IMG/VR virus record: IMGVR_UViG_3300025030_000041
Location: 124,001 to 188,000 of that record
Reading direction: 5' to 3' (one strand)
Length of the DNA stretch: 64,000 nt
Below are positions 17,500 to 55,414 of the stretch, in pieces (position 1 is the stretch's first letter; each line of letters begins with the position of its first letter). The notes beneath the pieces were generated by a model. It did no database searches. It was not told the DNA's origin and worked only from the letters and a program-made list of their open reading frames with translations. The position numbers were made by a program, and so were the translations under genes.

Positions 17500-18393
17500 T
17501 TAACTATAAACTTTTCCTTTTACATCAATTAATTCTCTTACTTCTTTTTGTGTAAATTTCTTTATATTATTATCAATCCAAACATTTCCTTTAACTATTT
17601 CAGGGGCTCCGTCAAGACTAGTTAGCATATTGTTATTACACATAAAACTTTCATTAATTATTCGTGGAGTTCCAATTAAATTAGTTAATATATTATAAGC
17701 ACACTTAAAGTATCTACTGACTATATTAGGGCCGCCTTCAAGACTAGTTAAGTTATTATTAGAACAATCAAAATATCCATTAACTGCAGTAGGACATCCT
17801 TCTAGACTAGTTAGTTTATTAGTATTACAATCAACATATCCATTAATCAATTTAGGCAAGTTGACTAGACTAGTTAAGTTATTATAAGAACAACTAAACG
17901 CACCACTTACTGTTTTTGGACCTCCTTCAAGACTAGTTAAGTTATTATTAGAACAATCAAAATATCCATTAACTGTAACAGGAGCTCCTTCAAGACTAGT
18001 TAAATTATTAGCATAACAATAAAAATTTCCATTCACTATAGTAGGAGATCCGTCTAAACTAGTTAAGGCATTATCAGAACAATCAAAAAAACCATCTATT
18101 TCATCTATACTTAATACTCTTAAATCATTTATACCTTTCACTCTAACATTACCTATTATTACTTTAATATTTTTAAAGTCTTCTATATTAGTATGCCCTA
18201 TACTAATAGCTTCATTAATAGGTTTCACTACAAATATTTGGTCTTTGGTATAACCTTTATTAAGGTAAGGAATAAGTAAGTCATCCCATCTTTCTTTTAG
18301 CCTTCTAGGTATAAATATATCTTTAGCGCTAAGCTTAGGAGTAGGGCTTTCTTCTTCAGATATAAATTGTTCAAATAGTTTTATATGTTTCAT
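17500..18393 (-). CDS. capsid-targeted LRR protein, paralogue 3 (8 repeats)
   Basis: conserved N-terminal core plus eight 21-aa repeats. Confidence 0.85.
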   Translation of the reverse strand: MKHIKLFEQFISEEESPTPKLSAKDIFIPRRLKERWDDLLIPYLNKGYTKDQIFVVKPINEAISIGHTNIEDFKNIKVIIGNVRVKGINDLRVLSIDEIDGFFDCSDNALTSLDGSPTIVNGNFYCYANNLTSLEGAPVTVNGYFDCSNNNLTSLEGGPKTVSGAFSCSYNNLTSLVNLPKLINGYVDCNTNKLTSLEGCPTAVNGYFDCSNNNLTSLEGGPNIVSRYFKCAYNILTNLIGTPRIINESFMCNNNMLTSLDGAPEIVKGNVWIDNNIKKFTQKEVRELIDVKGKVYS

Positions 18394-19699: not shown

Positions 19700-20275
19700 T
19701 TAAACATAAACTTTTCCTTTAACATCAACTACTCCTTTTACCTCTTCTTCGGTAAAGTTCTTTGTATTATCATTAATAGCAAAGTCGTCATTAACTACTT
19801 TAGGAGCTCCTTTAAGGTTAGTTAGTTTGTTATGACTGCAATAAAATCCAGCGTTAACTATAATAGGAGCTCCTTCTAGACTAGTTAACGTATTATTACT
19901 ACAAAAATAATCTTTAGTTACTAATAATTTAGGTCCTCCTTTTAAGCTAGTTAATCTATTAAATGAACAATTGAAATCTCCAGACACTTCATCTAAATTT
20001 AATTCTTTTAAAATATCTCCATTTATTATAACATCACCTATTATTACTTTAATATCCTTAAATTCTTTTACATTATTTTTAGTTATCTCTAGCTCTTCAT
20101 CAAGGGGTTTAGCAACGAATATTTGTTCTTTAGTATAACCTTTATTAAGGTAAGGAAGTACTAAGTCATCCCACCTTTCTTTTAGTCTCCTAGGTATAAA
20201 GATGTCTTTAGCACTAAGTTTAGGTTTCTTAGAGTCTTCAAGTATAAATTGTTCAAATAGTTTTATAGGTTTCAC
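19700..20275 (-). CDS. capsid-targeted LRR protein, paralogue 4 (3 repeats, GTG start)
   Basis: MKPIKLFEQFILED plus family core and repeats. Confidence 0.85.
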   Translation of the reverse strand: MKPIKLFEQFILEDSKKPKLSAKDIFIPRRLKERWDDLVLPYLNKGYTKEQIFVAKPLDEELEITKNNVKEFKDIKVIIGDVIINGDILKELNLDEVSGDFNCSFNRLTSLKGGPKLLVTKDYFCSNNTLTSLEGAPIIVNAGFYCSHNKLTNLKGAPKVVNDDFAINDNTKNFTEEEVKGVVDVKGKVYV

Positions 20276-24375: not shown

Positions 24376-25011
24376 TTAAACATAAACGTCTTCTTTTACA
24401 TCAATTACTTCTATTACTTCTTTTTTTGTAAATTTCTTTGTATTATTAGAACAATCAAACCATCCATTAATTGTAGTAGGAGCTCCTTCAAGACTAGTTA
24501 AATAATTATAAGAACAATCAAAACCTCCATTAACTGTAACAGGGGCTCCTTCAAGACTAGTTAACTTATTATTAGAACAATAAAAATATCCATTAACTGT
24601 AACAGGAGCTCCTTCAAGACTAGTTAACTTATTATAAAAACATGAAAAATATCCATTAACCGTCATAGGAGCTCCTTCTAGACTAGTTAAGTTAGTATTA
24701 GAACAATCAAAATTTCCAACTACTTCTTCTATATTTAGCTCTCTTAAATCGTTTATTTCCTTTATTCTAACATTACTAATTATGACTTTAATATTCTTAA
24801 AGTCTTCTATATTATTTTTAGTTATAAGCATATCTTTATTAAAAGGTTTAGCAATAAATATTTGTTCTTTGGTATAGCCTTTATTTAGGTAAGGAAGTAA
24901 CAGGTCATCCCAACGTTCTTTAAGTCTTCTAGGTATAAATATATCTTTAGCACTAAGTTTAGGAGTTTCTTCTTCAGATATAAATTGTTCAAACAGCTTC
25001 ATATGTTTCAT
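24376..25011 (-). CDS. capsid-targeted LRR protein, paralogue 5 (4 repeats)
   Basis: family core and repeats. Confidence 0.85.
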   Translation of the reverse strand: MKHMKLFEQFISEEETPKLSAKDIFIPRRLKERWDDLLLPYLNKGYTKEQIFIAKPFNKDMLITKNNIEDFKNIKVIISNVRIKEINDLRELNIEEVVGNFDCSNTNLTSLEGAPMTVNGYFSCFYNKLTSLEGAPVTVNGYFYCSNNKLTSLEGAPVTVNGGFDCSYNYLTSLEGAPTTINGWFDCSNNTKKFTKKEVIEVIDVKEDVYV

Positions 25012-26197: not shown

Positions 26198-26833
26198 TTA
26201 AACATAAACCTTTCCTTTTACATCAATTACTTCTCTTACTTCTTTTTCTGTAAATTTCTTTGTATTATTAGAACAATCAAACCATCCATTAATTGTAGTA
26301 GGAGCTCCTTCAAGACTAGTTAGTTTATTCGTATTACAATCAAAATATCCATTAAATGTAGCAGGAGCTCCTTCAAGACTAGTTATATTATTAATAAAAC
26401 AATAATAACTTCCCTTAGCTATAGTAGGACCCCCTTCAAGACTATTTAACTTATTATTAGAACAATAAAAACCTCCATTAACTGTAGTAGGAGATCCTTC
26501 AAGACTAGTTAAACTATTATTAGAACAATAAAAAAAACCAGTTACTTCGTCTATATCTAGCCCACTCAAATAAGTTATTTCATGTATTCTAACGTTACCT
26601 ATTATAACTTTAATATTCTTAAAGTCTTCTATATTATTTTTAGTTATAAGCATATCTTTATTAAAAGGTTTAGCGACAAATATTTGTTCTTTAGTATAAC
26701 CTTTATTTAGGTAAGGAAGTAACAGGTCATCCCAACGTTCTTTAAGTCTTCTAGGTATAAATATATCTTTAGCACTAAGTTTAGGAGTTTCTTCTTCAGA
26801 TATAAACTGCTCAAAAAGTTTTATATGTTTCAT
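26198..26833 (-). CDS. capsid-targeted LRR protein, paralogue 6 (4 repeats)
   Basis: family core; N- and C-terminal blocks nearly identical to paralogue 5. Confidence 0.85.
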   Translation of the reverse strand: MKHIKLFEQFISEEETPKLSAKDIFIPRRLKERWDDLLLPYLNKGYTKEQIFVAKPFNKDMLITKNNIEDFKNIKVIIGNVRIHEITYLSGLDIDEVTGFFYCSNNSLTSLEGSPTTVNGGFYCSNNKLNSLEGGPTIAKGSYYCFINNITSLEGAPATFNGYFDCNTNKLTSLEGAPTTINGWFDCSNNTKKFTEKEVREVIDVKGKVYV

Positions 26834-27525: not shown

Positions 27526-27825
27526 TTAATTTAATTTATTTTGAATAAAATATGTTATTTTAATACTACCATCAGCTTGAGTATCTATATCAAATAATTC
27601 AGTATCCCATAGATCTCCTAGGACATCATTCATTAGTTCTATGGTTAAAGTATCTTCTGGAATAACATTATACACATAATTTCCATCTGTAGTTACTCCA
27701 TCATATTCTATATCTCTAGCATGTTCTTTAAAGGTATTCCATAATATTTTTTTAATTTCATCTGGGTGATACTCTTCAAATTCATTAATAAATTCCTCAA
27801 ATATTTTAATGTGTTTCATTTTCAT
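27526..27825 (-). CDS. capsid-targeted small acidic protein
   Basis: MKHIKIFEEFINE. Confidence 0.7.
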   Translation of the reverse strand: MKMKHIKIFEEFINEFEEYHPDEIKKILWNTFKEHARDIEYDGVTTDGNYVYNVIPEDTLTIELMNDVLGDLWDTELFDIDTQADGSIKITYFIQNKLN

Positions 27826-28520
27826 GTATAAACTCCACCTTTTACTTTAACAGCGTTTCTCACTTCTTTTTCTGTAAATACTTTACTATTATAAGTAATA
27901 GTAAAATTTCCACCAACAATAGTAGGAGCTCCTTCTAGACTAATTAACATATTATCAGAACAATGAAAATTTCCAGTAACTGTAGTAGGAGCTCCTTCTA
28001 GACTAATTAACATATTATCAGAACAATGAAAATTTTCATTAACTGTAGTAGGAGCTCCTTCTAGACTAGTTAATTTATTATTAAAACAATAAAAATCTCC
28101 ATTAACTATAATAGGGCTTCCTTCAAGACTAGTTAATTTATTATTAAAACAATAAAAATCTCCATTAACTATAATAGGGCTTCCTTCAAGACTAGTTAGC
28201 TTATTATTAGAACAATTAAAATATCCAGTTACTTCTTCTATACCTAGTGCTCTCAGATCAGTTATTTCTTTTATTCTAACACCACCTATTATTACTTTAA
28301 TATTTTTAAAGTCTTCTATATTATCTTTAGTTATAATAATAGGTTCATTAAATGGTTTAGCAACAAGTATTTGTTCTTTGGTATAACCTTTATTTAGGTA
28401 AGGAATGAGCAAATCATCCCATCTTTCTTTAAGCCTCCTAGGTATAAATATATCTTTAGCGCTAGGCTTAGGAGTTTCTTCTTCAGATATGAATTGTTCA
28501 AAAAGTTTTATATATTTCAT
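27822..28520 (-). CDS. capsid-targeted LRR protein, paralogue 7 (5 repeats)
   Basis: family core; two pairs of near-identical 63-bp repeats. Confidence 0.85.
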   Translation of the reverse strand: MKYIKLFEQFISEEETPKPSAKDIFIPRRLKERWDDLLIPYLNKGYTKEQILVAKPFNEPIIITKDNIEDFKNIKVIIGGVRIKEITDLRALGIEEVTGYFNCSNNKLTSLEGSPIIVNGDFYCFNNKLTSLEGSPIIVNGDFYCFNNKLTSLEGAPTTVNENFHCSDNMLISLEGAPTTVTGNFHCSDNMLISLEGAPTIVGGNFTITYNSKVFTEKEVRNAVKVKGGVYT

Positions 28521-32066: not shown

Positions 32067-32094
32067 AAATAAACGATTGATTATCAATTAATTA

Positions 32095-32169
32095 TATTTA
32101 GTTCAAAAATAAAGTACTTAAAAATTTTAATATATCAAACTTATTTCTTATTTTTGTATTAAATATAAC
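32095..32169 (+). promoter_or_regulatory. gene-less promoter module, copy 1 (upstream GTTA deleted)
   Basis: near-identical to 35873-35950 and 56282-56359; TATTTTTG at 32149 fits the Bacteroidota -7 box TAnnTTTG. Confidence 0.65.
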
Positions 32170-32263
32170 GGTTACAGCCTTATTTAGTGTGGGCAAAATT
32201 TTTGTTTTCTTTTTTCTCCTCACAGTTCGTAGTAATGTTGATACGAAGCACGGTTATTGCATG

Positions 32264-32471
32264 TAACGTTTTCGGGCTTGGAGATAGTTTTTAATGCGAT
32301 TTAAACAACAGAAATATGTTAGAAAAGATACAGAAAAAAGTAGAAGACCTTAGAATAAAGGTATATGCTGGACAGAACAACGAAGACACAGAAAAATACT
32401 TATATGACATTGAGCAAATGATATTCAAAGCGATGGACGAAGCATTAAAGATTTCTTCCAAGCCAGTGTTA
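32264..32471 (+). repeat. attC-like hairpin H1 (208 bp, contains start of ORF 32316)
   Basis: TAAC gttttcg GGCTTGGA ... TCCAAGCC agt GTTA. Confidence 0.75.
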
Positions 32472-32564
32472 GCAGATAGTTGCCAACATAATTGGCTGAA
32501 ATCTCATTCAAGGCATATGCTCTATTGTGGGAGCTGCGGTAAATATAAACCCGAAGGCTCTTAG
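32316..32564 (+). CDS. cassette protein crossing the GTTA junction, CxxxW...CxxC C-terminus
   Basis: junction at KPV|LADS; Zn-ribbon-like CQHNW..CGSCG. Confidence 0.65.
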   Translation: MLEKIQKKVEDLRIKVYAGQNNEDTEKYLYDIEQMIFKAMDEALKISSKPVLADSCQHNWLKSHSRHMLYCGSCGKYKPEGS

Positions 32565-32578
32565 TTGGCAATTTCTGC

Positions 32579-32658
32579 TAACGTTTTGCAGATAAGCGAA
32601 GGCACAAATAGCTTTGGCTTTGTGGGGTGGGATTTGGGCTTTTGCTTATGTGCTGTTA
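32579..32658 (+). repeat. attC-like hairpin H2 (80 bp)
   Basis: TAAC gttttgc AGATAAGCGAAGGC ... GCTTTTGCTTATGT gct GTTA. Confidence 0.85.
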
Positions 32659-32733
32659 TGTGTCTGTAAAATTTTTAATAATTATTTTTTGCGTGGGAAT
32701 TAATCAATTTAATCATTTAATAAAAACAACAAA

Positions 32734-33264
32734 ATGGAAACTTTAAACAAATTATTTACCGAACAAGATGTAGAAAATGTATCAGAAAAAATACTTTCAT
32801 CAACTAAACAAAAAATCAAAGACCAAATTGCTGATACCTTTTACGAAGAAATGTCAGATTGTTTGTTTGAACATTACAACAATTTCAAAGACGGAATGAA
32901 AGCCGATTTGCTAAAGGAAATTACAGACCAATATGTAAGCGACCCTGTAAATTATCAATTTAGAGAATTTAGAAATAAGCTATTTGCAGAGAACAAAGAT
33001 GTAATTCTAAAATCATTGACCGACCAAGCAATTTTTGAAACAGTTGAGAGTATCATTTTAGAATATACTCATAAACAACAAACTTTTGGATGGATGTGGA
33101 ATGAGGCTATCGCAAAAATTGTATTAGCAAATTGGGGTAAATTCAAAGATGATGAAAGAATACAAATGTCATTTGGTAGAGAAATTGATAATTTGAAAGG
33201 ACAAATACAAAGACTGCAAGAACGACTAAATGAAGTTTCATCAATAGTAGACGAAAATCATTAA
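32734..33264 (+). CDS. cassette hypothetical protein (helical, C-terminal coiled coil)
   Basis: 176-aa ORF inside module 32655-33315. Confidence 0.7.
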   Translation: METLNKLFTEQDVENVSEKILSSTKQKIKDQIADTFYEEMSDCLFEHYNNFKDGMKADLLKEITDQYVSDPVNYQFREFRNKLFAENKDVILKSLTDQAIFETVESIILEYTHKQQTFGWMWNEAIAKIVLANWGKFKDDERIQMSFGREIDNLKGQIQRLQERLNEVSSIVDENH

Positions 33265-33311
33265 ATCATTTGTGCGGTGGGAAAAATAATTATTAAAAAT
33301 TTTATTGCACA

Positions 33312-33401
33312 TAACGGTTGGGGGTTTGCGATAGTGCCGCTTACCACAAATTCCAATTTCAGCACTAAACTTCATAGCGGCATTTTGCAAACCCTGTGTT
33401 A
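33312..33401 (+). repeat. attC-like hairpin H3 (90 bp)
   Basis: TAAC ggttgg GGGTTTGCGATAGTGCCGCT ... AGCGGCATTTTGCAAACCC tgt GTTA. Confidence 0.85.
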
Positions 33402-33448
33402 TATGAAGTTTTATTTTTTGAAGGGCGGGCAACAAACAAATTATTAAA

Positions 33449-33718
33449 ATGGAAAAATTAACATCAATCAGATTGCAGCCAATGATTAACATCAATAAAC
33501 CCAATATGGATTTGTGGTGTCCGACATTAAATTTTGGAAGAAAGAAAGCAGGTAAATTCAAATTTCCAATAGTATTTAAAAGTATTAAACCTGCTGAAAA
33601 ACTTTACGATGAACTCCAAAATTTAATTGGCAAATCATTGGACGAAGTGAAAGCTGCATCTGAACCGCTTTATGATAAATACAAGAAGTACGATTATCGG
33701 GTGGGTGGTAAAAAATAA
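33449..33718 (+). CDS. cassette hypothetical protein
   Basis: 89-aa ORF in module 33398-33731. Confidence 0.65.
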   Translation: MEKLTSIRLQPMININKPNMDLWCPTLNFGRKKAGKFKFPIVFKSIKPAEKLYDELQNLIGKSLDEVKAASEPLYDKYKKYDYRVGGKK

Positions 33719-33727
33719 AATTTCCTA

Positions 33728-33841
33728 TAACGGTTTGGTATAAACGCAGTGTTTAACTAAACTTAATTTGAAATACAAAACTTAAAATTATGATAAAGAC
33801 ATTGATTGAAAAACTGGAAACATTACGTTTATACTTTGTTA
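33728..33841 (+). repeat. attC-like hairpin H4 (114 bp, contains start of ORF 33790)
   Basis: TAAC ggtttg GTATAAACGCAGTGTTT ... AAACATTACGTTTATAC ttt GTTA. Confidence 0.85.
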
Positions 33842-33996
33842 GTAAACGCTGTTTTAAAGTAACTTATAAAAGTAAATTGAATGGTAATATAGGAACAATT
33901 GGATATTATGGTAAATCAATTGATGGTGTTAAGAAAAAGTTTCAAAAAGAATTTGAAAATTCAATTATTTTAGACGTTTCTTACAATGTTTACTAA
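33790..33996 (+). CDS. cassette protein crossing the GTTA junction
   Basis: LRLYFV|SKR; stop codon is the TAA of the next TAAC. Confidence 0.65.
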   Translation: MIKTLIEKLETLRLYFVSKRCFKVTYKSKLNGNIGTIGYYGKSIDGVKKKFQKEFENSIILDVSYNVY

Positions 33997-34365
33997 CGTT
34001 ATCGGGCTTGGCGAAGGGCGATTATTAACCGAGAATGTTACTACGAAGAACTAAACAAAAATTTAATAAATAAAAAAAGCGATGGAAATAGATGTAAAAA
34101 AACTGATGCCAGAAGTAACAGATAATCATTTTGAAACGATAGACTTGTTACTTAAAGCAAACCAAGAAATAATTGAAGCATTACATATTATGCAATCCAG
34201 CATTGACAATTGGGATGATGCAGAATGTATGCAAATCAATAAAGACAGAATGATAAAATACTTTAATAGATTTAGTAAGGAGGTGTAGGCTTTTTATTTA
34301 TTAAATTTTTGAACCGAAATGATAATACGAAGCGATAAACTAAGCCTTTTGCCAAGCCTGTGTTA
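33994..34365 (+). repeat. attC-like hairpin H5 (372 bp, encloses ORF 34082-34288)
   Basis: TAAC gttatcg GGCTTGGCGAAGGGC ... GCCTTTTGCCAAGCC tgt GTTA. Confidence 0.8.
34082..34288 (+). CDS. hypothetical protein inside hairpin loop
   Basis: 68-aa ORF with A-rich leader. Confidence 0.6.
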   Translation: MEIDVKKLMPEVTDNHFETIDLLLKANQEIIEALHIMQSSIDNWDDAECMQINKDRMIKYFNRFSKEV

Positions 34366-34404
34366 TAAGGCGAAGCGAACCGTTGGCTTTTCGCCAATGG
34401 CTTA

Positions 34405-34533
34405 TAACGGTTTGCAGGTTTATTCAGTTGCGACTTTAAAAACGAAAAATTATGATAACAGAAAAACAATACTTAAAAGCGAAAAAGTTAATTGCAGACT
34501 ACGAAAGCCAGCAATTGAATAAACATGTTGTTA
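34405..34533 (+). repeat. attC-like hairpin H6 (129 bp, contains start of ORF 34452)
   Basis: TAAC ggtttgc AGGTTTATTCAGTTGC ... GCAATTGAATAAACAT gtt GTTA. Confidence 0.85.
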
Positions 34534-34622
34534 TAAGCAGTAAGCCGACCTCAAAAAAGAAGAAGGTGATTATAGATGCAGATAAATTTTCAAAGATGTG
34601 TGATGTTATTAAACGGATATAG
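34452..34622 (+). CDS. 56-aa cassette protein crossing the GTTA junction (not in ORF track)
   Basis: own translation MITEKQYLKAKKLIADYESQQLNKHVV|ISSKPTSKKKKVIIDADKFSKMCDVIKRI. Confidence 0.6.
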   Translation: MITEKQYLKAKKLIADYESQQLNKHVVISSKPTSKKKKVIIDADKFSKMCDVIKRI

Positions 34623-34634
34623 GCTTATTGCTGC

Positions 34635-34758
34635 TAACGGCTACAAACATGCTTAGTGCCTAATTAAATAGTAATTAACAATCAAAATAGTAGAATTATG
34701 AAAATAGCAAAAATGTTCAAAACTGCACTACAACAGGCATTAAGTATGTTTGTTGTTA
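34635..34758 (+). repeat. attC-like hairpin H7 (124 bp, contains start of ORF 34698)
   Basis: TAAC ggctac AAACATGCTTAGTGCCT ... AGGCATTAAGTATGTTT gtt GTTA. Confidence 0.85.
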
Positions 34759-34958
34759 GCAACCATGTTTACTGGGTTTTCCGTAAATTCAAACGACTTG
34801 AAACAATGGAAACTGCACCTGAAACATGGTTAATTGATGTGGATTTTGCAATCCATTTTGTAGAGCCATTTAAAAGTTATAAAGAGGCAAAGAAAGCAGT
34901 TGACTTTGCAAAACATTTACAACCTTGGCAAGAGTTTGTCATCTTACATGGTTGCTAA
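34698..34958 (+). CDS. cassette protein crossing the GTTA junction
   Basis: ALSMFVV|SNH; stop codon is the TAA of the next TAAT core. Confidence 0.65.
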   Translation: MKIAKMFKTALQQALSMFVVSNHVYWVFRKFKRLETMETAPETWLIDVDFAIHFVEPFKSYKEAKKAVDFAKHLQPWQEFVILHGC

Positions 34959-35045
34959 TGGTTGAGTGTATGAGTAGTGTGGCTTTGCACATACTTTCAA
35001 CTTACAGATAAACTTATTTAGCCACATTACTTATACACTTTGTTA
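34956..35045 (+). repeat. attC-like hairpin H8 (90 bp, TAAT core)
   Basis: TAAT ggttga GTGTATGAGTAGTGTGGCT ... AGCCACATTACTTATACAC ttt GTTA. Confidence 0.85.
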
Positions 35046-35067
35046 TAGGTATGTAAAATTTACGGAT

Positions 35068-35292
35068 ATGAAATTTATAAAAAAACAATTACTTAGAAGT
35101 ATAAACTTTGTTAAACGCTATTGGGAATTTATCGTTGTAGAATTTGCCGAAGATTTGGATTTAACTTGGTTTGGTAAATGGTTTTTAAGAACAATGATGT
35201 TTGGTTTATTTATGTGTTATATTCCAATAGTAATTGTTTTTATGCCACTATGGTTAATTATATTCAAATACGATGAAAGTTTAGGAATGTAG
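35068..35292 (+). CDS. cassette membrane protein (one TM)
   Basis: hydrophobic MMFGLFMCYIPIVIVFMPLWLIIF. Confidence 0.6.
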   Translation: MKFIKKQLLRSINFVKRYWEFIVVEFAEDLDLTWFGKWFLRTMMFGLFMCYIPIVIVFMPLWLIIFKYDESLGM

Positions 35293-35312
35293 GTAGTAAA
35301 TTTTATTACCTA

Positions 35313-35400
35313 TAACATTTAGGTGTATGAGAAGGTTTGCTTAGATGAACTTTCAAATTACCGACAATACTTATAGCAAACTTTCTTATACACCTTGTTA
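35313..35400 (+). repeat. attC-like hairpin H9 (88 bp; second copy at 55317)
   Basis: TAAC atttag GTGTATGAGAAGGTTTGCT ... AGCAAACTTTCTTATACAC ctt GTTA. Confidence 0.85.
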
Positions 35401-35460
35401 TAACCAGTACGATAAAATTAGTAGAAACTTAAATTGAAACATAAATAAAATTTTTTAAAT

Positions 35461-35781
35461 ATGAACGAATACAAATTAAAATTATTGGATTACATCTCAA
35501 AAAATTATGAGAATGTGGTAAAATCAGCACAAGGTGGTGAATATATTGAAATAGATTTAATACCAAACAGCCACGATGGATTACACGATTTACCCGAAAT
35601 TTTGGAATGTTGTGAAAAAAACGGAATTGATGTATATATGTTTTTACGTAGTTATCCAATGGATATTGGTGATGGTATTAGAATGGGAAGATATATGTAT
35701 TATATGCAAAAAACCACCAAGGCAATACTGGATGATTTAAAAAATTTTAACACAGAAACTCAAAACGAAGAACAAAAGTAA
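35461..35781 (+). CDS. cassette hypothetical protein
   Basis: 106-aa ORF in module 35397-35794. Confidence 0.65.
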   Translation: MNEYKLKLLDYISKNYENVVKSAQGGEYIEIDLIPNSHDGLHDLPEILECCEKNGIDVYMFLRSYPMDIGDGIRMGRYMYYMQKTTKAILDDLKNFNTETQNEEQK

Positions 35782-35790
35782 TATTGGTTA

Positions 35791-35876
35791 TAACGTTCTG
35801 TAAATATGATTAGTTGAAGAGTACTGTCATTTATAATTTAGTAGATTGATTATCAATTAATTATATTTACTTGTTA
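35791..35876 (+). repeat. attC-like hairpin H10 (86 bp; copies at 56199 and partial at 32075)
   Basis: TAAC gttct GTAAATATGATTAGTTGA ... TCAATTAATTATATTTAC tt GTTA. Confidence 0.85.
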
Positions 35877-35950
35877 TATTTAGTTCAAAAATAAAGTACT
35901 AAACGTGTTAATATATCAAAAATATTTCTTATTTTTGTATTAAATATAAC
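35873..35950 (+). promoter_or_regulatory. gene-less promoter module, copy 2
   Basis: GTTATATTTAGTTCAAAAATAA...TTATTTTTGTATTAAATATAAC; TAnnTTTG at 35930. Confidence 0.7.
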
Positions 35951-36070
35951 GGTTGAGAATATAAGTAGTAACCGATTTGAAACAAAAATGTTAAATTAAC
36001 GTATAATGATATTAAAAGGTAGTAACTTAAATAAACCACATAACTCGGTTATTACTTATATTCTTTGTTA
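35947..36070 (+). repeat. attC-like hairpin H11 (124 bp)
   Basis: TAAC ggttga GAATATAAGTAGTAACCGA ... TCGGTTATTACTTATATTC ttt GTTA. Confidence 0.85.
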
Positions 36071-36097
36071 TGTGTATGTAAAAATAAATTTATACCA

Positions 36098-36373
36098 ATG
36101 AAAAAAGAAATTAAAATAGGTGACAAGACGTTTGAATTTGAGAGTCCAAACATCTTAGATAAATCAACAACAGATATGATGAATGACTGGTGTAGATTAG
36201 TAGAACAACAAAAGAGTGATGAAGATGTTTGGACGGTGATACCTGAACTACCAGAATACAAATTCAAAAATCTTAAAATAGAGAGTAGTCCGTTTGAAAC
36301 AACAGAAGAAACTACTGAAATGACAGTAACTTTTAAGTATGATGATTTTGAATTTGATGATAAAAACTCATAA
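36098..36373 (+). CDS. cassette acidic hypothetical protein
   Basis: ATG at 36098 in module 36067-36395. Confidence 0.65.
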   Translation: MKKEIKIGDKTFEFESPNILDKSTTDMMNDWCRLVEQQKSDEDVWTVIPELPEYKFKNLKIESSPFETTEETTEMTVTFKYDDFEFDDKNS

Positions 36374-36391
36374 ATTTATTTTTATTACACA

Positions 36392-36474
36392 TAACGGTTG
36401 AGGGTTTATGCAGTTAAATTTTTACCAATAAAAAATAGAAATGAAAAAATTTTATTGCATTAAACCCTGTGTTA
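36392..36474 (+). repeat. attC-like hairpin H12 (83 bp)
   Basis: TAAC ggttga GGGTTTATGCAGTTAAATTTTT ... AAAAATTTTATTGCATTAAACCC tgt GTTA. Confidence 0.85.
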
Positions 36475-36552
36475 GCCGTCTGTATTTTTTAAACATTATT
36501 TTTTTAGGGAGGCATTTAATTAATCAATTTAATCATTAATAAAAACAAAAAA

Positions 36553-37110
36553 ATGGAACAAGTAAAAAAAGCATACGAAGAAATATTCAAAGCGTTAAAG
36601 AAACACAAGGACATTTGCGTTTTTGATGTAGAAGATTTGGAAAGAAAATCAAAAGTTCATCTTTTCGGGCTTACATTAAAAGAGGAATATGGCTTAAACA
36701 TAGACCCGAAGCAAGTTCAGGCGGTAAACTATTTTAAACCATCAGACCATACTTGGATTGGATGGTATGGCGAAAAGCATAATCGAACAATAAGCTGGAG
36801 CGTTGATGGCAGACAGCCCGAAGATGAACTTTTATTGCAAATCGGATTTCCAACAGGGGCTTATATTTTTGGCGAAGATTATGCAACCGATTTCTTTCAA
36901 AAGTTTTGGTTGGAATTGAAAACATACAAGCCCGATTATATTGATGAAGCGAACTGTTGCTTGTATTGGAACATCAAAAACGCAAAAGAGATTTTCAATT
37001 CATATAACGCTTTGCTAAAAAAATATTACGAACTAAATAAAGAGGATGCGAAACAAAGACTAATTGATAAAATGAAAAAGGAATTGGAGCAGTTAGAAAA
37101 ATCATCTTAA
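36553..37110 (+). CDS. cassette hypothetical protein
   Basis: 185-aa ORF in module 36471-37159; ISWSVDGRQP, FPTGAYIFG motifs. Confidence 0.7.
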   Translation: MEQVKKAYEEIFKALKKHKDICVFDVEDLERKSKVHLFGLTLKEEYGLNIDPKQVQAVNYFKPSDHTWIGWYGEKHNRTISWSVDGRQPEDELLLQIGFPTGAYIFGEDYATDFFQKFWLELKTYKPDYIDEANCCLYWNIKNAKEIFNSYNALLKKYYELNKEDAKQRLIDKMKKELEQLEKSS

Positions 37111-37283
37111 TCATTGGAGCGTTGGCAAAAAATAATGTTTAAAAAATATTGCGGCTAACTATTATATATATACAAGTATGCTTAATATATTGAATATGAA
37201 TACTAAATTCGATTGCATTATCAGACAATTTAAAAAAACTCAGATAACCCCTTAATACACATCAAATAAAACAATTTAAACTT

Positions 37284-37484: not shown

Positions 37485-37693
37485 GTCAAGACCAAATTAA
37501 TGAAGTCTTAAATCATGCAAAAGATATGATAAGACAACACCCAGAATACAGATGGGGCCAATCTGTATTTAATTCACTATGCCAGTTTTACCCAGACACA
37601 GCTAATGCAATCCGCACAACTGAAAATGATCCGTATTATAATGATGGTATAGTTGACCAGTGTATTAATTTTATAAAAGAAAAAGAGGATTAA
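37469..37693 (+). CDS. small phage protein
   Basis: YRWGQSVFN...DPYY motif. Confidence 0.6.
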   Translation: MFKKLSQDQINEVLNHAKDMIRQHPEYRWGQSVFNSLCQFYPDTANAIRTTENDPYYNDGIVDQCINFIKEKED

Positions 37694-37716
37694 AAATTTA
37701 ATTTTAATCCTCTTTT
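37681..37716. terminator. bidirectional intrinsic terminator between convergent genes
   Basis: AAAAGAGGATTAAAA-ATTTAA-TTTTAATCCTCTTTT. Confidence 0.75.
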
Positions 37717-40647: not shown

Positions 40648-41094
40648 TTAAGTATAGACATCACCTTTTACATCAATTAATTTTCGTACTTCTTCTTCTG
40701 TAAATTTCTTCTTATTATTATTACTAAAAAAATTTCCATTAACTATTTTAGGAGCGCCTTCTAGACTAATTAAGTTATTATAAGAACAACTAAAATATCC
40801 AACTACTTCTTCTATATTTAGCTCTCTTAAATCGTTTATTTCCTTTATTTTAGCATTACCTATTAAAACCGTAATATTCTTAAAATCTTTCATATTATCT
40901 TTAGTTATAATAAAAGTGTCATTAATGGGTTTCACTACAAATATTTGTTCTTTGGTATAACCTTTATTAAGGTAAGGAAGTAATAAGTCATCCCATCTTT
41001 CTTTAAGCCTCCTAGGTATAAATATATCTTTAGCGCTAAGCTTAGGAGTTTCTTCTTCGGATATAAATTGTTCAAATAGTTTTATGTGTTTCAT
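40648..41094 (-). CDS. capsid-targeted LRR protein, paralogue 8 (1 repeat)
   Basis: minimal member with intact N- and C-caps. Confidence 0.85.
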   Translation of the reverse strand: MKHIKLFEQFISEEETPKLSAKDIFIPRRLKERWDDLLLPYLNKGYTKEQIFVVKPINDTFIITKDNMKDFKNITVLIGNAKIKEINDLRELNIEEVVGYFSCSYNNLISLEGAPKIVNGNFFSNNNKKKFTEEEVRKLIDVKGDVYT

Positions 41095-43233: not shown

Positions 43234-43749
43234 TTAATAATTAATAATTCCAGCTTTAGTATCAATTGCATGTTTTATTTCTTTTTGTAAAAACTTTTTG
43301 CCTCTATTTTGGGATATGATAACATCATCTGTAACTAATTTAGGAGCTCCTTCTAGACTAGTTAATGCATTAAAAGTACTAATGAATCTGCCATTTACTA
43401 TTTTAGGACTACCTTTACGATTAGTTAAATTATTGCTAGAACAATTAAAATCTCCAAGCACCTCATCTATATCTATATCCCATTTATTCATATCGCCGTT
43501 TATATAAACTAAACCAACTATAATTTTAATATCTTTAAAATCTTTTACATTATTATCATTTATAATAACTTCATCTCTAAGAGATTTAGCAACTACTATT
43601 TGTTCTTTTGTATAACCTTTATTAAGGTAAGGGATAAGAAGGTCATCCCATCTTTCTTTAAGTCTTCTAGGTATAAATATATTTTTACGACTAAGTTTAG
43701 GTATGTCTTCTTCAGATATAAACTGTTCAAATAATTTAATACGTCTCAT
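43234..43749 (-). CDS. capsid-targeted LRR protein, paralogue 9 (2 repeats, divergent)
   Basis: MRRIKLFEQFISEE plus family core. Confidence 0.8.
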   Translation of the reverse strand: MRRIKLFEQFISEEDIPKLSRKNIFIPRRLKERWDDLLIPYLNKGYTKEQIVVAKSLRDEVIINDNNVKDFKDIKIIVGLVYINGDMNKWDIDIDEVLGDFNCSSNNLTNRKGSPKIVNGRFISTFNALTSLEGAPKLVTDDVIISQNRGKKFLQKEIKHAIDTKAGIINY

Positions 43750-43798: not shown

Positions 43799-44296
43799 TT
43801 AAAAATTAAAATCTTTTGCAATTTTAGTTATATTGTTATCTAATTCAGTTAGGTCACACTCTTTAGATTTTAATATATAAAAATCCAAATTAAAAAATTG
43901 TAATGGCTTATGTGTATACTTTAAAGATGACCTGTATTTTTTAACAATTTTATAACAAAACCTATCATAAAAAAGTCTTCTAGTTTTAGATTCGTCTAAT
44001 GCACAAAAAATAAAAGACTCTGGCTGTATTTCTTCTATAAATTGAATGGCTGCTGAATCGATAGTAGGAATAGATAAAAAAGCTTTTTTAGGATCATTTA
44101 ACAACTTAAATTCTCCATTTGCTTTAAACTTAAATAACCAGTGGTTTTGTAAAGTTGAATAGTTTGTGATAGCTATATCATATTTAATATCATCTATTTT
44201 AAATACTCCTATCCATTCGCTTTGCGATTTATTCCAATTTATTAATAACGGATTTTTTAATCCTTCTATAATAAATTTTTGAAAATTTTTAAACAT
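43799..44296 (-). CDS. capsid-targeted protein (intact relative of pseudogene at 2232/3897)
   Basis: MFKNFQKFIIE; RRLFYDRF motif. Confidence 0.65.
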   Translation of the reverse strand: MFKNFQKFIIEGLKNPLLINWNKSQSEWIGVFKIDDIKYDIAITNYSTLQNHWLFKFKANGEFKLLNDPKKAFLSIPTIDSAAIQFIEEIQPESFIFCALDESKTRRLFYDRFCYKIVKKYRSSLKYTHKPLQFFNLDFYILKSKECDLTELDNNITKIAKDFNF

Positions 44297-44993
44297 AAAC
44301 TTCTCCTTTTATATCAATAACATGTCTTACTTCTTTTTCTGTAAATTTCTTTAAATTATTGCTTATATTAAAATCTCCTCTTATTATAGAGGGTGTCCCT
44401 TCAAGGCTAGTTAATCTATTATAAGAACAATCAAAAAAGCCATTAACTATAACGGGACCACCATCTAAACTAGTTAAGATATTATTAGAACAATTAAAGT
44501 TACCTCCTATTGTGGAAAGGCATCCTTCAAGACTAGTTAACTTATTATTAGAGCATGAGAAATTTCCATTAACTGATACAGGACTTCCTTCTAAACTAGT
44601 TAAGTTATTATTAGAACAACTAAAATACCCATTAACTATAGTAGGACCGCCTTCTAAACTAGTTAGTTTATTTAACTTATTTAAGTAACAATCAAAATTT
44701 CCTGATATTTCATCTACCCTTAATACTCTCAAATCATTTATTCCTCGTATTATAGCATTACCTATTATAACTTTAATATTCTTAAAGTCTTTTATATTAT
44801 TTTTAGTTATACTAATAACTTCATTAAAGGGTTTAGTTACAAATATTTGGTCTTTTGTATAACCTTTATTTAGATATGGAATACACAAAGAATCTCGTCT
44901 TTCTTTAAGTGGTATAAATATATCTTTGACACTATAATTATGATTCTTAAATTTATTAGATGCATTACAGTCTAATAGACTATGATATTTCAT
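44289..44993 (-). CDS. LRR protein, paralogue 10 (5 repeats; targeting peptide replaced)
   Basis: family core from KDIFIP onward, unrelated first ~20 aa. Confidence 0.8.
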   Translation of the reverse strand: MKYHSLLDCNASNKFKNHNYSVKDIFIPLKERRDSLCIPYLNKGYTKDQIFVTKPFNEVISITKNNIKDFKNIKVIIGNAIIRGINDLRVLRVDEISGNFDCYLNKLNKLTSLEGGPTIVNGYFSCSNNNLTSLEGSPVSVNGNFSCSNNKLTSLEGCLSTIGGNFNCSNNILTSLDGGPVIVNGFFDCSYNRLTSLEGTPSIIRGDFNISNNLKKFTEKEVRHVIDIKGEVYV

Positions 44994-52234: not shown

Positions 52235-54364
52235 ATGAAAAAAATTCTTTTATTTTTAAGTATTGGATATTTATCAATTCAATTTTCAAGTGCTCAGTTT
52301 GCAATAATAAAAACACAAACTAATGCAACATGTGTAGGAGATAGTAATGGTACAGCAAAAGTTTCAGTAAGTAGACGAACCCCTCCATATACTTACTCTT
52401 GGTCTAAAGACGGATCAACCGATGTTATTGGAATATCTGATAGTCTAAGTGGGTTAACTGCAGGGTCTTATAATTGCAATATTACAGACGTTGAGGGATT
52501 CCAAACTACCATCTCATTTACTATTACTTATAAAAGTCGTATTATTAGTACAACTGGGGGGTTTGGGTGTGAGACCATACTTCCATCATGTAGTTCTAGT
52601 AATACCGGGTCAGCATGTATACAAGTTTGGCAAGGAATTCCTCCATATACCTATTCTTGGAATACTACTCCTATACAGACAACTGAGACGGCCATTAATC
52701 TTTCCGAAGGATATTACACATATAGTATTACAGATTCACTTGGATGTTCAGATACTAATTCTTTTTATTTACCCTCAGCTATTCCTAACTTCAATCTTTC
52801 ATTCGCGGCAAGCCCACAAACTGGAGTATCACCTCTTGCTGTAGCTTTTAATAATAATACACCAAATATTGATAATTATACTTTTAAATGGTTTTTTGGT
52901 GATGGAAACTCTATTGATGATAGCAGTAGTACAGTATTTCATACATATCAATACTCAGGTAGCTATGATATAGCGCTAATTGCAATTGATAAAAATACTG
53001 GGTGTAGCGACACTCTTTTAAAAAATGGATTTATTTATACAACTGGAGCAGGATGTACACATAGCGCAACAATTACTACACTAAGTTCTACTACAGCGTG
53101 CCAAGGAGATACTATAATTCTTTCTGCAAATATAGACACATCTTTTACTTATAAATGGAATATAAACGGCACGGCTATTGATGGAGAAACTAATAATATA
53201 TTAAAAGCTACTCAAACTGGATATTATTCCGTAACTGTTTTAAAAGATAATTGTCCAGTTACCTCAAATGCTACACCAGTAACATTTAAAAATGGGCCAC
53301 CTATTCCTACTATTACTTCGGTAGGAACAATTGAGCCATGTATAGGTGGAGCAGTTACATTATCAGTTATGCCTATATATGGAATAAACTATTTATGGAA
53401 TACTGGAGATACTACTAATTCTATAACTACACATAATACTGGAATTTATTCAGTATCATTAGTAGATACTATATCAGGGTGTAGTAAAATGTCTGATATA
53501 TATAGACTTAGCACAACTCTATCTATACAAGATATTTGTATGGTAACATCAAATGATTCTTCAACTCATAATATTATTATTTGGGAAAAACCCATATCTA
53601 CTAATATAGATAGCTTTATAATTTATAGAGAAGTTGTAACGAATGTATATAATAAAATTGCAAGTATTAATTACAATTCATTAAGTGAATATCATGATTA
53701 TGACGCTAATCCAAATGTAACATCGTATAAGTATAAAATTGAAGTCATTGATACATGTGGCTCAGTGAGCCAATTAAGTAATTTTCATAACAGTATTCAT
53801 TTACAAAATTTAGGTAATGGTAATTTTCAGTGGACTCTATATAATATAGAAAATTCTATTAATCCTATCCAGTATTATATAATGTATCGTGACAATTATA
53901 GAAATGGCAGTTTTTTGCCAATAAGTAGTACTATTCCATCTGGAAATTCAACGTATACAGACTTAGAGTATTCAATGTATCCAGATGCTAAGTATAGAGT
54001 CGCAGCTTTATGGAATATTTCATGTATTCCTACTAAAAAAACTAATGAAATACCTCCAAATACTACGTATTCTAATATAAAAAATCAGGAAAGTATACCC
54101 ACTGGAATTTCATTTAATAATATAGATTTAAGTATCTCAGCTTACCCTAACCCTACAAATAATATAGTAAATATAGAAGGATTAGGACAGATTAAAAAAG
54201 GATCAATACAAATTATTAATATTACTGGACAAATCCTTTACACTGAGCATATTTCAAGCACTCCTAATATAAAACAAATAGATATTAGTAGTTACTATAA
54301 TGGATTTTATACTATAGTTATAGAAAATCATGGAATTAAAACCTATAAAAAAATAAAAAAATAA
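52235..54364 (+). CDS. T9SS-cargo-like surface protein: signal peptide, SprB-like repeats, PKD and Ig-like domains, type A C-terminal sorting domain
   Basis: MKKILLFLSIGYL signal; C..S.G.A....G.PPYTYSW repeats; WFFGDG...HTY...G.Y PKD; AYPNPTNNIVNI...IDISSYYNGFYTIVI...YKKIKK CTD. Confidence 0.85.
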   Translation: MKKILLFLSIGYLSIQFSSAQFAIIKTQTNATCVGDSNGTAKVSVSRRTPPYTYSWSKDGSTDVIGISDSLSGLTAGSYNCNITDVEGFQTTISFTITYKSRIISTTGGFGCETILPSCSSSNTGSACIQVWQGIPPYTYSWNTTPIQTTETAINLSEGYYTYSITDSLGCSDTNSFYLPSAIPNFNLSFAASPQTGVSPLAVAFNNNTPNIDNYTFKWFFGDGNSIDDSSSTVFHTYQYSGSYDIALIAIDKNTGCSDTLLKNGFIYTTGAGCTHSATITTLSSTTACQGDTIILSANIDTSFTYKWNINGTAIDGETNNILKATQTGYYSVTVLKDNCPVTSNATPVTFKNGPPIPTITSVGTIEPCIGGAVTLSVMPIYGINYLWNTGDTTNSITTHNTGIYSVSLVDTISGCSKMSDIYRLSTTLSIQDICMVTSNDSSTHNIIIWEKPISTNIDSFIIYREVVTNVYNKIASINYNSLSEYHDYDANPNVTSYKYKIEVIDTCGSVSQLSNFHNSIHLQNLGNGNFQWTLYNIENSINPIQYYIMYRDNYRNGSFLPISSTIPSGNSTYTDLEYSMYPDAKYRVAALWNISCIPTKKTNEIPPNTTYSNIKNQESIPTGISFNNIDLSISAYPNPTNNIVNIEGLGQIKKGSIQIINITGQILYTEHISSTPNIKQIDISSYYNGFYTIVIENHGIKTYKKIKK

Positions 54365-54423
54365 TTAAATATTAAATACTGCTAAATTACAATATACTTT
54401 TGTATTATTTTAATACAAGTATG

Positions 54424-54460
54424 TATATCAAAAACTTTTCTTATATTTGTATTAAATACT
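54424..54460 (+). promoter_or_regulatory. Bacteroidota-type promoter related to the promoter module
   Basis: TATATCAAAAACTTTTCTTATATTTGTATTAAATA; TATATTTG at 54442. Confidence 0.6.
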
Positions 54461-54492
54461 AAGTTTTATTTTTAACCTAAAACCTATATATC

Positions 54493-54906
54493 ATGACATT
54501 AGATGAATCTATAAAAGTACTTGAATTATTTAACAAGTGGAGAAGAGGTGAAGAGATACCTCAAGAAAACCCGACTAAAATTGGAATAGCAATTGATATT
54601 GTTTTAGATGAATTAAAAAAGTTAAGCCACTTTACGCATAATACAGTAGAATGTGATAAAAATAGGATAGGCCCTACTGATTTAATAGACTTAGAAAAAA
54701 ATGATTTAGTTAAATTATTAACAGTTACATTGCCATATTATTCAAAACTAAGTGAATCTGAAAAAGACCTAGTTGCTAAAGGTGGATTATTACCAAATGG
54801 TAGTACTACAGGAGAGCTATATTGGAATTATTGTAAGTTAGTTAGTATGGACCGGCTAGATTTATTTAAATTATATGTTATATGCAAAGACAGTTGGAAG
54901 AGATAA
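54493..54906 (+). CDS. hypothetical phage protein (possibly fused modules)
   Basis: N-terminal FNKWRRG...KIGIAID motif. Confidence 0.65.
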   Translation: MTLDESIKVLELFNKWRRGEEIPQENPTKIGIAIDIVLDELKKLSHFTHNTVECDKNRIGPTDLIDLEKNDLVKLLTVTLPYYSKLSESEKDLVAKGGLLPNGSTTGELYWNYCKLVSMDRLDLFKLYVICKDSWKR

Positions 54907-55309: not shown

Positions 55310-55316
55310 TTGGTAG

Positions 55317-55393: not shown

Positions 55394-55414
55394 TAAAATT
55401 TAACTTTTTGAGCT

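Follow-up and report, generated by a model that had tools for sequence, protein, structure and literature searches.

Why should a phage genome contain a series of hairpins that sit in front of short genes, have a fixed asymmetric geometry and fold preferentially on the coding strand, the reverse of what is known for canonical attC sites? To address this question, we analyzed a window of 64,000 nucleotides (IMG/VR record IMGVR_UViG_3300025030_000041, positions 124,001 to 188,000), in which an earlier note had described such hairpins from the sequence alone and had proposed either a new att geometry inverted relative to the genes or selection acting on the transcript. The source contig is 246,115 bp long and belongs to a T4-like phage of Bacteroidota, which encodes a T4-type terminase, topoisomerase II and a tail sheath, plus a protein with a T9SS sorting domain. 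The observation was confirmed, both in this window and in 395 related hairpins from 68 viral loci.

A strict hairpin detector gave 13 hits on the + strand of the window and 1 on the - strand, compared with 1.4 for both strands together in shuffled windows. The left spacer is consistently longer than the right: the window spacers (left, right) are (5,2), (5,1), (4,1), (6,2) and (6,3), with about (7,3) read by eye for the first hairpin. When spacers were left unconstrained, the left-minus-right difference was 3 in 195, 4 in 130 and 2 in 37 of 407 distinct hairpins, and the mirrored geometry was almost absent (4 hairpins against 414). In an alignment of 55 hairpins, 91.4% of cells pair against 68.6% in shuffles, with 297 double-change cells against 93 and a covariation score of 0.572 against 0.181, which was reached in 0 of 500 shuffles; slid controls score 0.16 or less. 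RNAalifold recovered the same stem independently, with 16 of 18 pairs compensated.

The two strands of these hairpins are not equivalent. Window hairpins carry 27 G:T mispairs on the + strand against 5 on the - strand, and across 395 hairpins the means are 2.14 and 0.21 per hairpin, with 372 hairpins having more on + and 5 having more on -. The conserved G that the note had placed 18-20 nt after TAAY corresponds to stem position r=15, counted from GTTA, where the right arm is T in 97%, the left arm is G in 70%, and the pair is Watson-Crick in only 6%. The wobbles are position-specific (r=2, 10, 12, 15), whereas the G-C-rich positions r=3-5 show 3% or less, and strand-biased C-to-T decay therefore does not explain them. 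The + strand is the more stable in 11 of 13 window hairpins as DNA and in 12 of 13 as RNA, and across the family in 345 of 374 as DNA (mean difference -1.9 kcal/mol) and in 334 of 374 as RNA (-4.9 kcal/mol). Notably, in canonical attC sites G:T mispairs are enriched on the recombined strand (1.24 against 0.39; PMC5027507); here, the G:T-rich strand is the coding strand.

In the window, the hairpins form part of an array of 12 cassettes (32075-37255, + strand), one of at least six arrays in this phage genome. Each cassette runs from one TAAC core to the next and consists of C, a 4-6-nt spacer, a roughly 19-bp stem with a variable loop, a 1-3-nt spacer, GTTA, a short cassette-specific word x, the gene, the complementary word x', and TAA. 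The 5' end of the array is formed by an ORF-less promoter-like element (32075-32169), which ends in the first TAAC (32166-32169) and has about 13 copies in the same genome at 82-100% identity. Its promoter role is inferred only; a sigma-70 scan showed no enrichment. The element lacks here the hairpin that precedes its mobile copies, and it occurs with different upstream hairpins or with none. It is followed by a second ORF-less unit between two TAAC cores (32166-32263), which carries a ...GATACGAAGCAC... element and no convincing stem; related elements precede the attI-like site in other contigs.

The first cassette (32264-32578) contains the weakest hairpin of the set (32264-32471, about 9-bp stem and about 200-nt loop), with an ORF (32316-32564) that starts inside the loop; its x (GTTAGCAGATAGTTGCC at 32468) pairs, as read by eye, with x' before the TAAC at 32579. 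Cassette 2 (32579-33311) has a hairpin at 32579-32658 and an ORF at 32734-33264 (176 aa, no family match), and cassette 3 (33312-33727) a hairpin at 33312-33401 and an ORF at 33449-33718. In cassette 4 (33728-33993; hairpin 33728-33841), the ORF (33790-33996) starts in the loop and its stop codon is the TAA of the next core. In cassette 5 (33994-34404), a whole ORF (34082-34288) sits in the loop of its hairpin (33994-34365), enclosed by the arms at 33994-34021 and 34340-34365; after GTTA only a short x/x' stem-loop follows (34362-34408), so the gene position is empty. Cassette 6 (34405-34634; hairpin 34405-34533), whose ORF (34452-34622) also starts in the loop, occurs at 99% identity in two other arrays of the genome, with unrelated flanks up to TAAC on both sides. 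In cassette 7 (34635-34955; hairpin 34635-34758), the ORF (34698-34958) starts in the loop and its stop codon is the TAA of the next core (TAAT). Cassette 8 (34956-35312) combines a hairpin with a 20-bp stem and two G:T pairs (34956-35045) with an ORF at 35068-35292, and cassette 9 (35313-35790) a hairpin at 35313-35400 with an ORF at 35461-35781. Cassette 10 (35791-35946) has no ORF, but contains a hairpin (35791-35876) followed by the promoter-like element (35878-35950), and it occurs at 99.4% identity in another array, bounded by TAAC on both sides. Cassette 11 (35947-36391) has a hairpin at 35947-36070 and an ORF at 36065-36373. Finally, cassette 12 (36392-37155) has a hairpin at 36392-36474 and an ORF at 36553-37110, and its x (GTTAGCCG) pairs with x' (CGGCTAAC at 37152-37159).

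The array ends in an attI-like stretch (37156-37195, +), in which TAAC is followed by TATTATATATATAC... and which is 91% identical to the stretch before the intact recombinase gene in L003, one of the loci compared. Immediately behind it lies a remnant of a tyrosine recombinase gene (37196-37255, +), in which about the first 17 codons are homologous before a stop follows and the rest is missing; the window's own array has lost its recombinase gene. A second, decayed array (54420-56370, +) holds a partial promoter-like element (54420-54458), a decayed hairpin similar to that of cassette 9 (55317-55395), a hairpin at 55599-55722, and a hairpin at 56199-56285 followed by the promoter-like element (56287-56358). 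This array ends in ...AAATATAA plus a TATATATATA run, with no recombinase.

We next asked which side of the hairpin forms the cassette boundary. One possibility is that these are ordinary attC sites recombining on the bottom (-) strand with crossover at G|TTA, so that each gene precedes its site. Indeed, the order of gene, TAAC and GTTA looks like R''...R' of attC, and small attC clusters have been reported in phages, including a Polaribacter phage (PMC9892861). However, duplicated cassettes and reading frames place the boundaries at the left core, TAA|C. Homology blocks start at TAAC 188 times and at GTTA 7 times; seven gene-containing blocks run TAAC to TAAC and none runs GTTA to GTTA; and among near-identical cassettes found in different arrays, the hairpin travels with the downstream gene in 8 cases and with the upstream gene in none. 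The ORF start lies inside the upstream hairpin, so that the reading frame crosses GTTA, in 96 of 257 cassettes and lies upstream of TAAC in 1, while the stop lies at or before the next TAAC in 256 of 257, and in 64 it is the TAA of the core itself. Together with the + strand preference in G:T pairs and folding stability, the lack of bulged extrahelical bases, and a recombinase that is not an integron integrase, these data make an ordinary integron fragment very unlikely. Identical hairpins do occur in front of unrelated genes, so the GTTA side is also a junction over evolutionary time.

The cassette ends provide a further clue, as the bases after GTTA pair with those before the next TAAC, as an excised circle would need. 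Of the 6 nt next to the cores, x and x' pair at 5.00 positions, compared with 2.38 within one hairpin in the array and 2.24 for random pairs, and all six pair in 122 of 254 cassettes against 1 of 254. In the window, a permutation test reached the observed pairing in 0 of 20,000 trials. These findings bear on the possibility that the cassettes are shuffled by homologous or microhomology-mediated recombination at the conserved (A)TAACGGTT motif without participation of the neighboring recombinase, as proposed for the PeSL promoter/stem-loop cassettes of T4-type phages, for which shuffling is documented (PMC4122927). The phage is T4-like with small ORFs in variable regions, and the longest conserved word lies at the left core, where the boundaries fall. 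Yet shared sequence between different hairpins is about 9 nt or less, the stems differ and covary, the x/x' pairing is cassette-specific with 97 distinct 5-nt words, and the recombinase gene and attI-like motif are conserved next to the arrays. We thus consider this explanation improbable.

The recombinase is linked to the arrays. Two intact paralogues (51% identical) lie elsewhere in the genome and, like the remnant in the window, each lies directly after an array. The intact 271-aa copy (L003:9748-10563) matches PF00589 at 3e-38, and the conserved catalytic motifs are among the invariant columns. At least 99 viral stretches encode relatives of this recombinase, and most of the fetched loci with upstream sequence carry co-oriented arrays: in 78 fetched loci, 414 hairpins lie on the recombinase strand and 4 on the other. 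The arrays end at a conserved TAAC|TATTATATATA motif, which lies about 35-55 nt upstream of the recombinase start codon in most of 68 distinct upstream regions. Furthermore, an identical cassette occurs both inside an array and next to the attI-like site (locus L021), and a 97.5% identical cassette lies next to attI in locus L075 but inside the array in loci L054 and L064.

The recombinase is closest to Xer-type enzymes and lacks the region that holds the I2 helix, which integron integrases are reported to have acquired for single-strand recombination (PMC7790495). This raises the alternative that it acts on double-stranded DNA at the TAAC cores, as in dif/Xer or pdif-module recombination, with the hairpins kept for another reason such as cruciform formation, regulation or RNA structure. 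The attI-like partner has no hairpin, and both cores act as junctions over evolutionary time. On the other hand, only 4-5 nt are conserved at each core, which is too little for a typical arm-spacer-arm site; the stems and the x/x' words covary, so pairing is what is selected; and the wobbles are strand- and position-specific. A purely double-stranded reaction remains possible, but seems unlikely.

Similarly, the hairpins might be RNA elements only, such as processing sites, stabilizers or translational controls of a polycistronic transcript, with the G:U bias reflecting selection on the mRNA. The wobble pairs lie on the transcribed strand, the energy difference between strands is larger as RNA, and start codons lie in the loop in 37% of cassettes. 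However, the hairpins have no T-run and are thus not intrinsic terminators, and canonical attC sites show the same G:T signature on a strand that does not encode the cassette gene. Selection on the RNA is not excluded as an extra layer, because it would act on the same strand, but it cannot explain the TAAC-bounded mobile units, the copies next to the attI-like site or the recombinase linkage, and we regard it as an unlikely sole explanation.

Taken together, these results support the first of the two readings offered in the earlier note, with two refinements. Relative to the recombinase gene and the attI-like site, the geometry is the canonical one, as the folding strand encodes the recombinase and the array lies upstream of it; what is inverted is the orientation of the cassette ORFs. 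In addition, selection on the RNA may act as an extra layer. Although no experiment supports this, and the core helix of a hairpin in the array is only 4-5 bp long, we propose with reasonable confidence that the arrays represent an integron-like gene-cassette system, in which a phage-encoded Xer-like tyrosine recombinase recognizes the site folded on the + strand and exchanges that strand inside the 5' core (TAA|C), in parallel to integron integrases, which cut the 5'-AAC-3' of the folded attC bottom strand. That the substrate is single-stranded DNA, that this recombinase catalyzes the reaction, and where it cuts within (A)TAAC(G) are inferred by analogy. Recombination between two neighboring cores would release a circle, in which x' and x close a 15-bp helix next to the core, and recombination between a circle and the conserved TAAC|TATTATATATA site would insert the cassette next to the recombinase gene. 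The conserved G:T pairs and T mismatches, together with the 3-4-nt spacer asymmetry, make the two strands unequal and probably play the part that extrahelical bases play in attC.

We found no published description of such a system, but it can be compared with several known ones. Bacterial integrons (IntI integrase, attI, attC cassettes) likewise contain an array of promoterless small-gene cassettes, each with an imperfect hairpin site flanked by AAC/GTT cores, in which structure rather than sequence is conserved. In both systems, the cassette ends pair, a tyrosine recombinase gene and a hairpin-less primary site sit at one end of the array, the folding strand is the one that encodes the recombinase, with the array upstream of it, and G:T mispairs are enriched on one strand. 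In the phage arrays, however, the ORFs lie on the folding strand and downstream of their site, so the crossover core is at the 5' end of the gene and genes are transcribed towards the recombinase, which has 271 aa and lacks about 46 aa that span the integron-specific insert. Moreover, the unpaired spacer is 4-6 nt on the left against 1-3 nt on the right, conserved G:T or T mismatches replace bulged bases, genes can sit in, or start in, the hairpin loop, one phage genome carries several arrays, and a mobile promoter-like cassette stands in for a promoter at the integrase end.

The attC clusters (CALINs) reported in phage genomes (Qi et al. 2023, PMC9892861) are also phage-borne hairpin recombination sites between small genes, including in a phage of Flavobacteriia. 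Those are a few canonical attC sites found with IntegronFinder and recombined by IntI1, with the bottom strand more efficient than the top, and no dedicated recombinase clade, inverted gene polarity or multi-array organization was described. PeSL mobile regulatory cassettes (PMC2839356, PMC4122927) likewise involve small ORFs in the variable regions of T4-like phages, each flanked by a repeated stem-loop-containing motif that marks the points of gene exchange. PeSLs are conserved promoter-plus-terminator sequences thought to act by homologous recombination, whereas here only the cores are conserved, the stems covary, the cassette ends pair, and a recombinase with a primary site is linked to the arrays. 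Finally, a parallel may be drawn with the XerCD-mediated integration of CTX-type filamentous phages, which appears to involve a Xer-family recombinase and a folded single-stranded attP, a hairpin that imitates a duplex site with an imperfect central region. In that case, a whole phage genome would be integrated at the host dif site using host enzymes, whereas here a phage enzyme is linked to arrays of many different hairpins that carry single genes.

The window has 27% G+C and encodes a T4-type large terminase, both topoisomerase II subunits, a 942-aa tail-sheath-like protein, and a DEAD/ResIII helicase. It corresponds to positions 124001-188000 of a 246,115-bp viral contig, and the same locus is present at 99.99% identity in a second sample (3300025012), which therefore revealed no cassette variation. 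Searches against isolated phages returned no match at the DNA level, while a tblastn search with the recombinase described below retrieved nothing above about 36% identity, apart from one fragment that covers 65% of the protein at 40%. The host is probably a member of the Bacteroidota, since the phage encodes a 709-aa protein (52235-54364) with an SprB repeat, PKD domains, and a C-terminal T9SS sorting domain, which also points to use of the host secretion system. Consistently, relatives of the recombinase occur in Bacteroidota genomes, and the nearest isolated-phage integrases come from Polaribacter and Cellulophaga phages. The window additionally contains a family of at least 11 paralogous genes of about 150-300 aa (5922-6608, 8563-9228, 17500-18393, 19700-20275, 24376-25011, 26198-26833, 27822-28520, 40648-41094, 43234-43749, 44289-44993, and 62946-63578), which are 74-88% identical at the DNA level and share the repeated GGAGCTCC...CTAGACTAGTTAA word; two tested members give weak leucine-rich-repeat matches. 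Outside the window, a further stretch of the same phage genome (L003) carries a family B DNA polymerase fragment with an intein splicing domain (L003 5223-6926) and, nearby, a gene for a sigma-70-like factor (L003 4076-4681).

Between the helicase gene, which ends at 32066, and the sheath gene lies a run of small + strand ORFs separated by hairpins of the form TAAC, spacer, stem, loop, stem, spacer, GTTA. A strict detector finds 13 such hairpins on the + strand of the window and 1 on the - strand, compared with 1.4 for both strands together in shuffled windows. The earlier note had proposed that these hairpins have a fixed asymmetric geometry and fold preferentially on the gene strand, and both points hold. 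The left spacer exceeds the right by 3 or 4 nt in every window hairpin, and, when spacers are left free, the difference is 3 in 195, 4 in 130, and 2 in 37 of 407 related hairpins. As DNA, the + strand folds more stably than the - strand in 11 of 13 window hairpins, and as RNA in 12 of 13. Pfam and PHROGs searches with the cassette ORFs gave no meaningful match, and the only Rfam match in the window is a tRNA at 10098-10170.

To examine the wider family, we used the recombinase to retrieve 80 further viral loci and, from these and the source genome, collected 395 non-redundant hairpins from 68 loci. The TAAC and GTTA cores are near-invariant, whereas the stem, which covers positions 3-21 counted from GTTA, is variable in sequence and pairs in register with no conserved bulge. 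Its irregularities are conserved G:T or T mismatches, mainly at position 15, where the right arm is T in 97%, the left arm is G in 70%, and the pair is Watson-Crick in only 6% of hairpins. G:T pairs are also frequent at positions 2, 10, and 12, and T:G at positions 13 and 14, while C/A and A/C combinations, which would be the wobbles of the - strand, are rare. On average, each hairpin carries 2.14 G:T mispairs on the + strand against 0.21 on the - strand, and the + strand is the more stable in 345 of 374 hairpins as DNA and in 334 of 374 as RNA. Neutral, strand-biased C-to-T decay does not explain this bias, because the wobbles sit at fixed positions while nearby G-C-rich positions show almost none. 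Comparison of 55 diverse hairpins further revealed that 91.4% of cells pair against 68.6% in shuffles, with 297 double-change cells against 93, and that controls with the partner slid by 1-3 columns collapse. RNAalifold finds the same stem unaided, and compensatory changes are seen in 16 to 18 of the pairs in the roughly 19-bp stem.

Four independent lines of evidence show that the unit of inheritance runs from one TAAC to the next, so that the hairpin belongs to the gene downstream of it. First, duplicated units are bounded in this way: window 34405-34638, which comprises a hairpin and a 56-aa gene, recurs at 99% identity in two other arrays of the same genome, with flanks that are unrelated right up to TAAC on both sides, and window 35791-35950 behaves the same way. 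Across all loci, homology blocks begin at TAAC 188 times and at GTTA 7 times, and seven gene-containing blocks run TAAC to TAAC, whereas none runs GTTA to GTTA. Second, where homologous genes sit in different contexts, the upstream hairpin is the same and the downstream one differs in 8 cases, while the converse never occurs. Third, in 257 cassettes the first in-frame ATG lies inside the upstream hairpin in 96 and upstream of TAAC in 1, and the stop codon lies at or before the next TAAC in 256 of 257, in 64 of which it is the TAA of the core itself. In the window, cassettes 1, 4, 6, and 7 start in the loop, and cassette 5 has its whole ORF there. These boundaries and reading frames, together with the strand bias, contradict the alternative that the locus is a canonical attC cluster of the kind reported in a few phages (PMC9892861).

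The fourth line of evidence is the pairing of cassette ends. The bases after GTTA of one hairpin (word x) are complementary to those before TAAC of the next (word x'), with on average 5.00 of 6 positions paired, compared with 2.38 for the two sides of one hairpin and 2.24 for random pairs. All six positions pair in 122 of 254 cassettes against 1 of 254, and in the window a permutation test reached the observed pairing in 0 of 20,000 trials. Notably, these words differ between cassettes, with 97 different 5-nt words, and the helix they would form in an excised circle runs about 15 bp and carries one more conserved + strand wobble at position 7. A transposon with terminal inverted repeats was rejected, because only 4 nt are conserved at the ends and the rest covaries. 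Homologous recombination of the type proposed for the PeSL cassettes of T4-type phages (PMC4122927) would fit the T4-like setting, but not the cassette-specific end pairing, the linkage to a recombinase, or the very short shared sequence, as different hairpins have in common only the cores and a few stem positions. Double-stranded recombination at the cores would fit the Xer-like enzyme described below, but not the covariation or the strand-specific wobbles.

Identical hairpins precede unrelated genes, and in a run from another groundwater study, contigs keep the leader and trailer of three window cassettes but carry other sequence in place of the ORF (32699-33258, 34061-34306, and 36553-37100), which suggests exchange at the level of the ORF between conserved flanks. 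The leaders of cassettes 2 and 12 are also alike (32698-32750 and 36518-36570). Some cassettes are empty, with GTTA-x and x'-TAAC joined by a small loop (window 34362-34408; L067 2330-2358, in another of the collected loci), and in other contigs the same 11-nt loop, TCGTTTTAATG, closes both these empty cassettes and the minimal 48-nt hairpins, which may bear on how genes enter cassettes. In addition, a recurrent short ORF-less element (...AAT[A/C]GAAGCAC, 4 nt, GTAGCA.TG, then x'-TAAC) is found in the window (32225-32263) and just before the attI-like motif in loci L018, L038, L039, L070, L077, L079, and L092, where it is often the last unit before the recombinase; related direct repeats (34034-34050 and 34322-34338) flank the ORF that sits inside the loop of H5, the hairpin of cassette 5. 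When contigs of four public runs were compared with the array, the joints mostly reflected paralogous arrays or related phages, and although one joint runs TAAC to TAAC (34639 to 35791) at genome-like depth, nothing in these contigs, which were examined without read data, bears on excised circles.

In another array of the same genome, the last TAAC is followed after 37 nt by a 271-aa tyrosine recombinase gene on the same strand (PF00589, 3e-38), and a 51%-identical paralogue follows a third array. The window's array ends in the same way, with TAAC at 37156 and a start codon at 37196, but only about 17 codons of the gene remain. A second, degenerate array (54420-56370) contains a decayed copy of hairpin H9 (55317-55395; 85% identical), which has lost its right core through a short deletion, and ends in an attI-like TATATATATA run with no recombinase. 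At least 99 viral stretches encode relatives of the recombinase at 47-58% identity, many on contigs of 100-360 kb, and in 78 fetched loci 414 hairpins lie on the recombinase strand and 4 on the other, mostly in the stretch just upstream of the gene. In most of 68 distinct upstream regions, a variable word followed by TAAC|TATTATATATA lies about 35-55 nt before the start codon, and the same motif precedes the recombinase remnant in the window. One 394-bp cassette occurs twice at 100% identity in one contig, once inside the array and once next to this motif, and another cassette lies next to the motif in one contig and inside the array in two others, which is what insertion at a primary site would leave behind. 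Bacteroidota genomes contain recombinase homologues of 38-57% identity over the best segment (mostly 39-50%), but these lack TAAC/GTTA arrays (15 + hits against 28 - hits in 865 kb), apart from two bins that may be viral.

The recombinase falls below the cut-offs of every NCBI family model. Its best score is with XerA-type recombinases (194.6 bits against a cut-off of 220), and integron integrases come second, with TIGR02249 matched in two stretches at 170.7 bits against a cut-off of 265. Against the Vibrio integron integrase structure (VchIntIA, 2a3v), residues 21-179 align with 18-179 and 204-260 with 250-306, so that about 46 residues of IntI, which span the integron-specific insert containing the I2 helix, have no counterpart, whereas the alignment to Xer-type structures is continuous.

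The ORFs are transcribed toward the recombinase. Transcription must enter from the far end of the array or from within it. An ORF-less, promoter-like element of about 77 nt, with about 13 copies in the phage genome, stands at the 5' end of arrays without a hairpin and also moves as a TAAC-bounded cassette behind hairpin H10 (window 32075-32169, 35878-35954, 56287-56358, and, in part, 54420-58; also L003, L008, L009, and L011). Its promoter role is an inference, and a sigma-70 promoter scan, which does not model Bacteroidota promoters, showed no enrichment. A purely RNA role of the hairpins would fit the strand of the wobbles and the start codons in the loops, but not the mobile units, the primary site, or the recombinase, although an additional RNA role remains possible. 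The hairpins are not intrinsic terminators, as none of the array hairpins was called in a terminator scan; the only terminator-like site is a bidirectional hairpin at 37681-37716, beyond the array, between the last + strand genes and the sheath gene on the - strand.

Taken together, these comparative data make it somewhat more likely than not that a separate lineage of integron-like gene-capture systems exists in large phages of Bacteroidota, built on an I2-less Xer-like recombinase that would recombine hairpins folded on the coding strand, with each cassette carrying its site at the 5' end of the gene and genes even sitting inside the loop of the site. We found no published description of such a system in the limited literature searched. 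If this reading is correct, structure-specific single-strand cassette recombination arose, or persisted, outside the IntI family, and it gives virulent phages exchangeable banks of accessory genes. It would extend cassette capture from bacterial chromosomes and plasmids to a widespread group of large phages that use their own compact recombinase and carry several arrays per genome. The arrays mark hundreds of phage accessory genes with no family match, which are candidates for host-takeover or counter-defence functions, and a 271-aa recombinase with a site as short as 48 nt could also become a tool.

Integron integrases are thought to have moved from double-strand to single-strand recombination by gaining the I2 helix (PMC7790495). 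The phage enzyme lacks that region, yet is tied to structured, strand-marked hairpins, and offers a natural test of whether the insert is needed. The sites themselves also depart from attC, as they lack bulged extrahelical bases and, instead of a roughly 5/6-nt unpaired central spacer, have spacers of 4-6 nt against 1-3 nt. In canonical integrons, the integrase cuts the 5'-AAC-3' in the 5' arm of the folded bottom strand, the gene lies on the top strand, upstream of its attC, and top-strand recombination would invert the cassette, while G:T mispairs are enriched on the recombined strand (1.24 against 0.39; PMC5027507). Read along its + strand, the phage system has the canonical layout: the array comes first, followed by the primary site and then the recombinase gene in sense, each unit begins with the C of an AAC core followed by its hairpin, and the G:T excess is on that strand. 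What differs is that the ORFs are also on that strand, and this inverted polarity would show that the link between the recombined strand and the coding strand is not fixed. One of the two readings offered in the earlier note, that the att geometry is inverted relative to the genes, is therefore supported, although the precise statement is that the genes, not the sites, are inverted relative to the recombinase.
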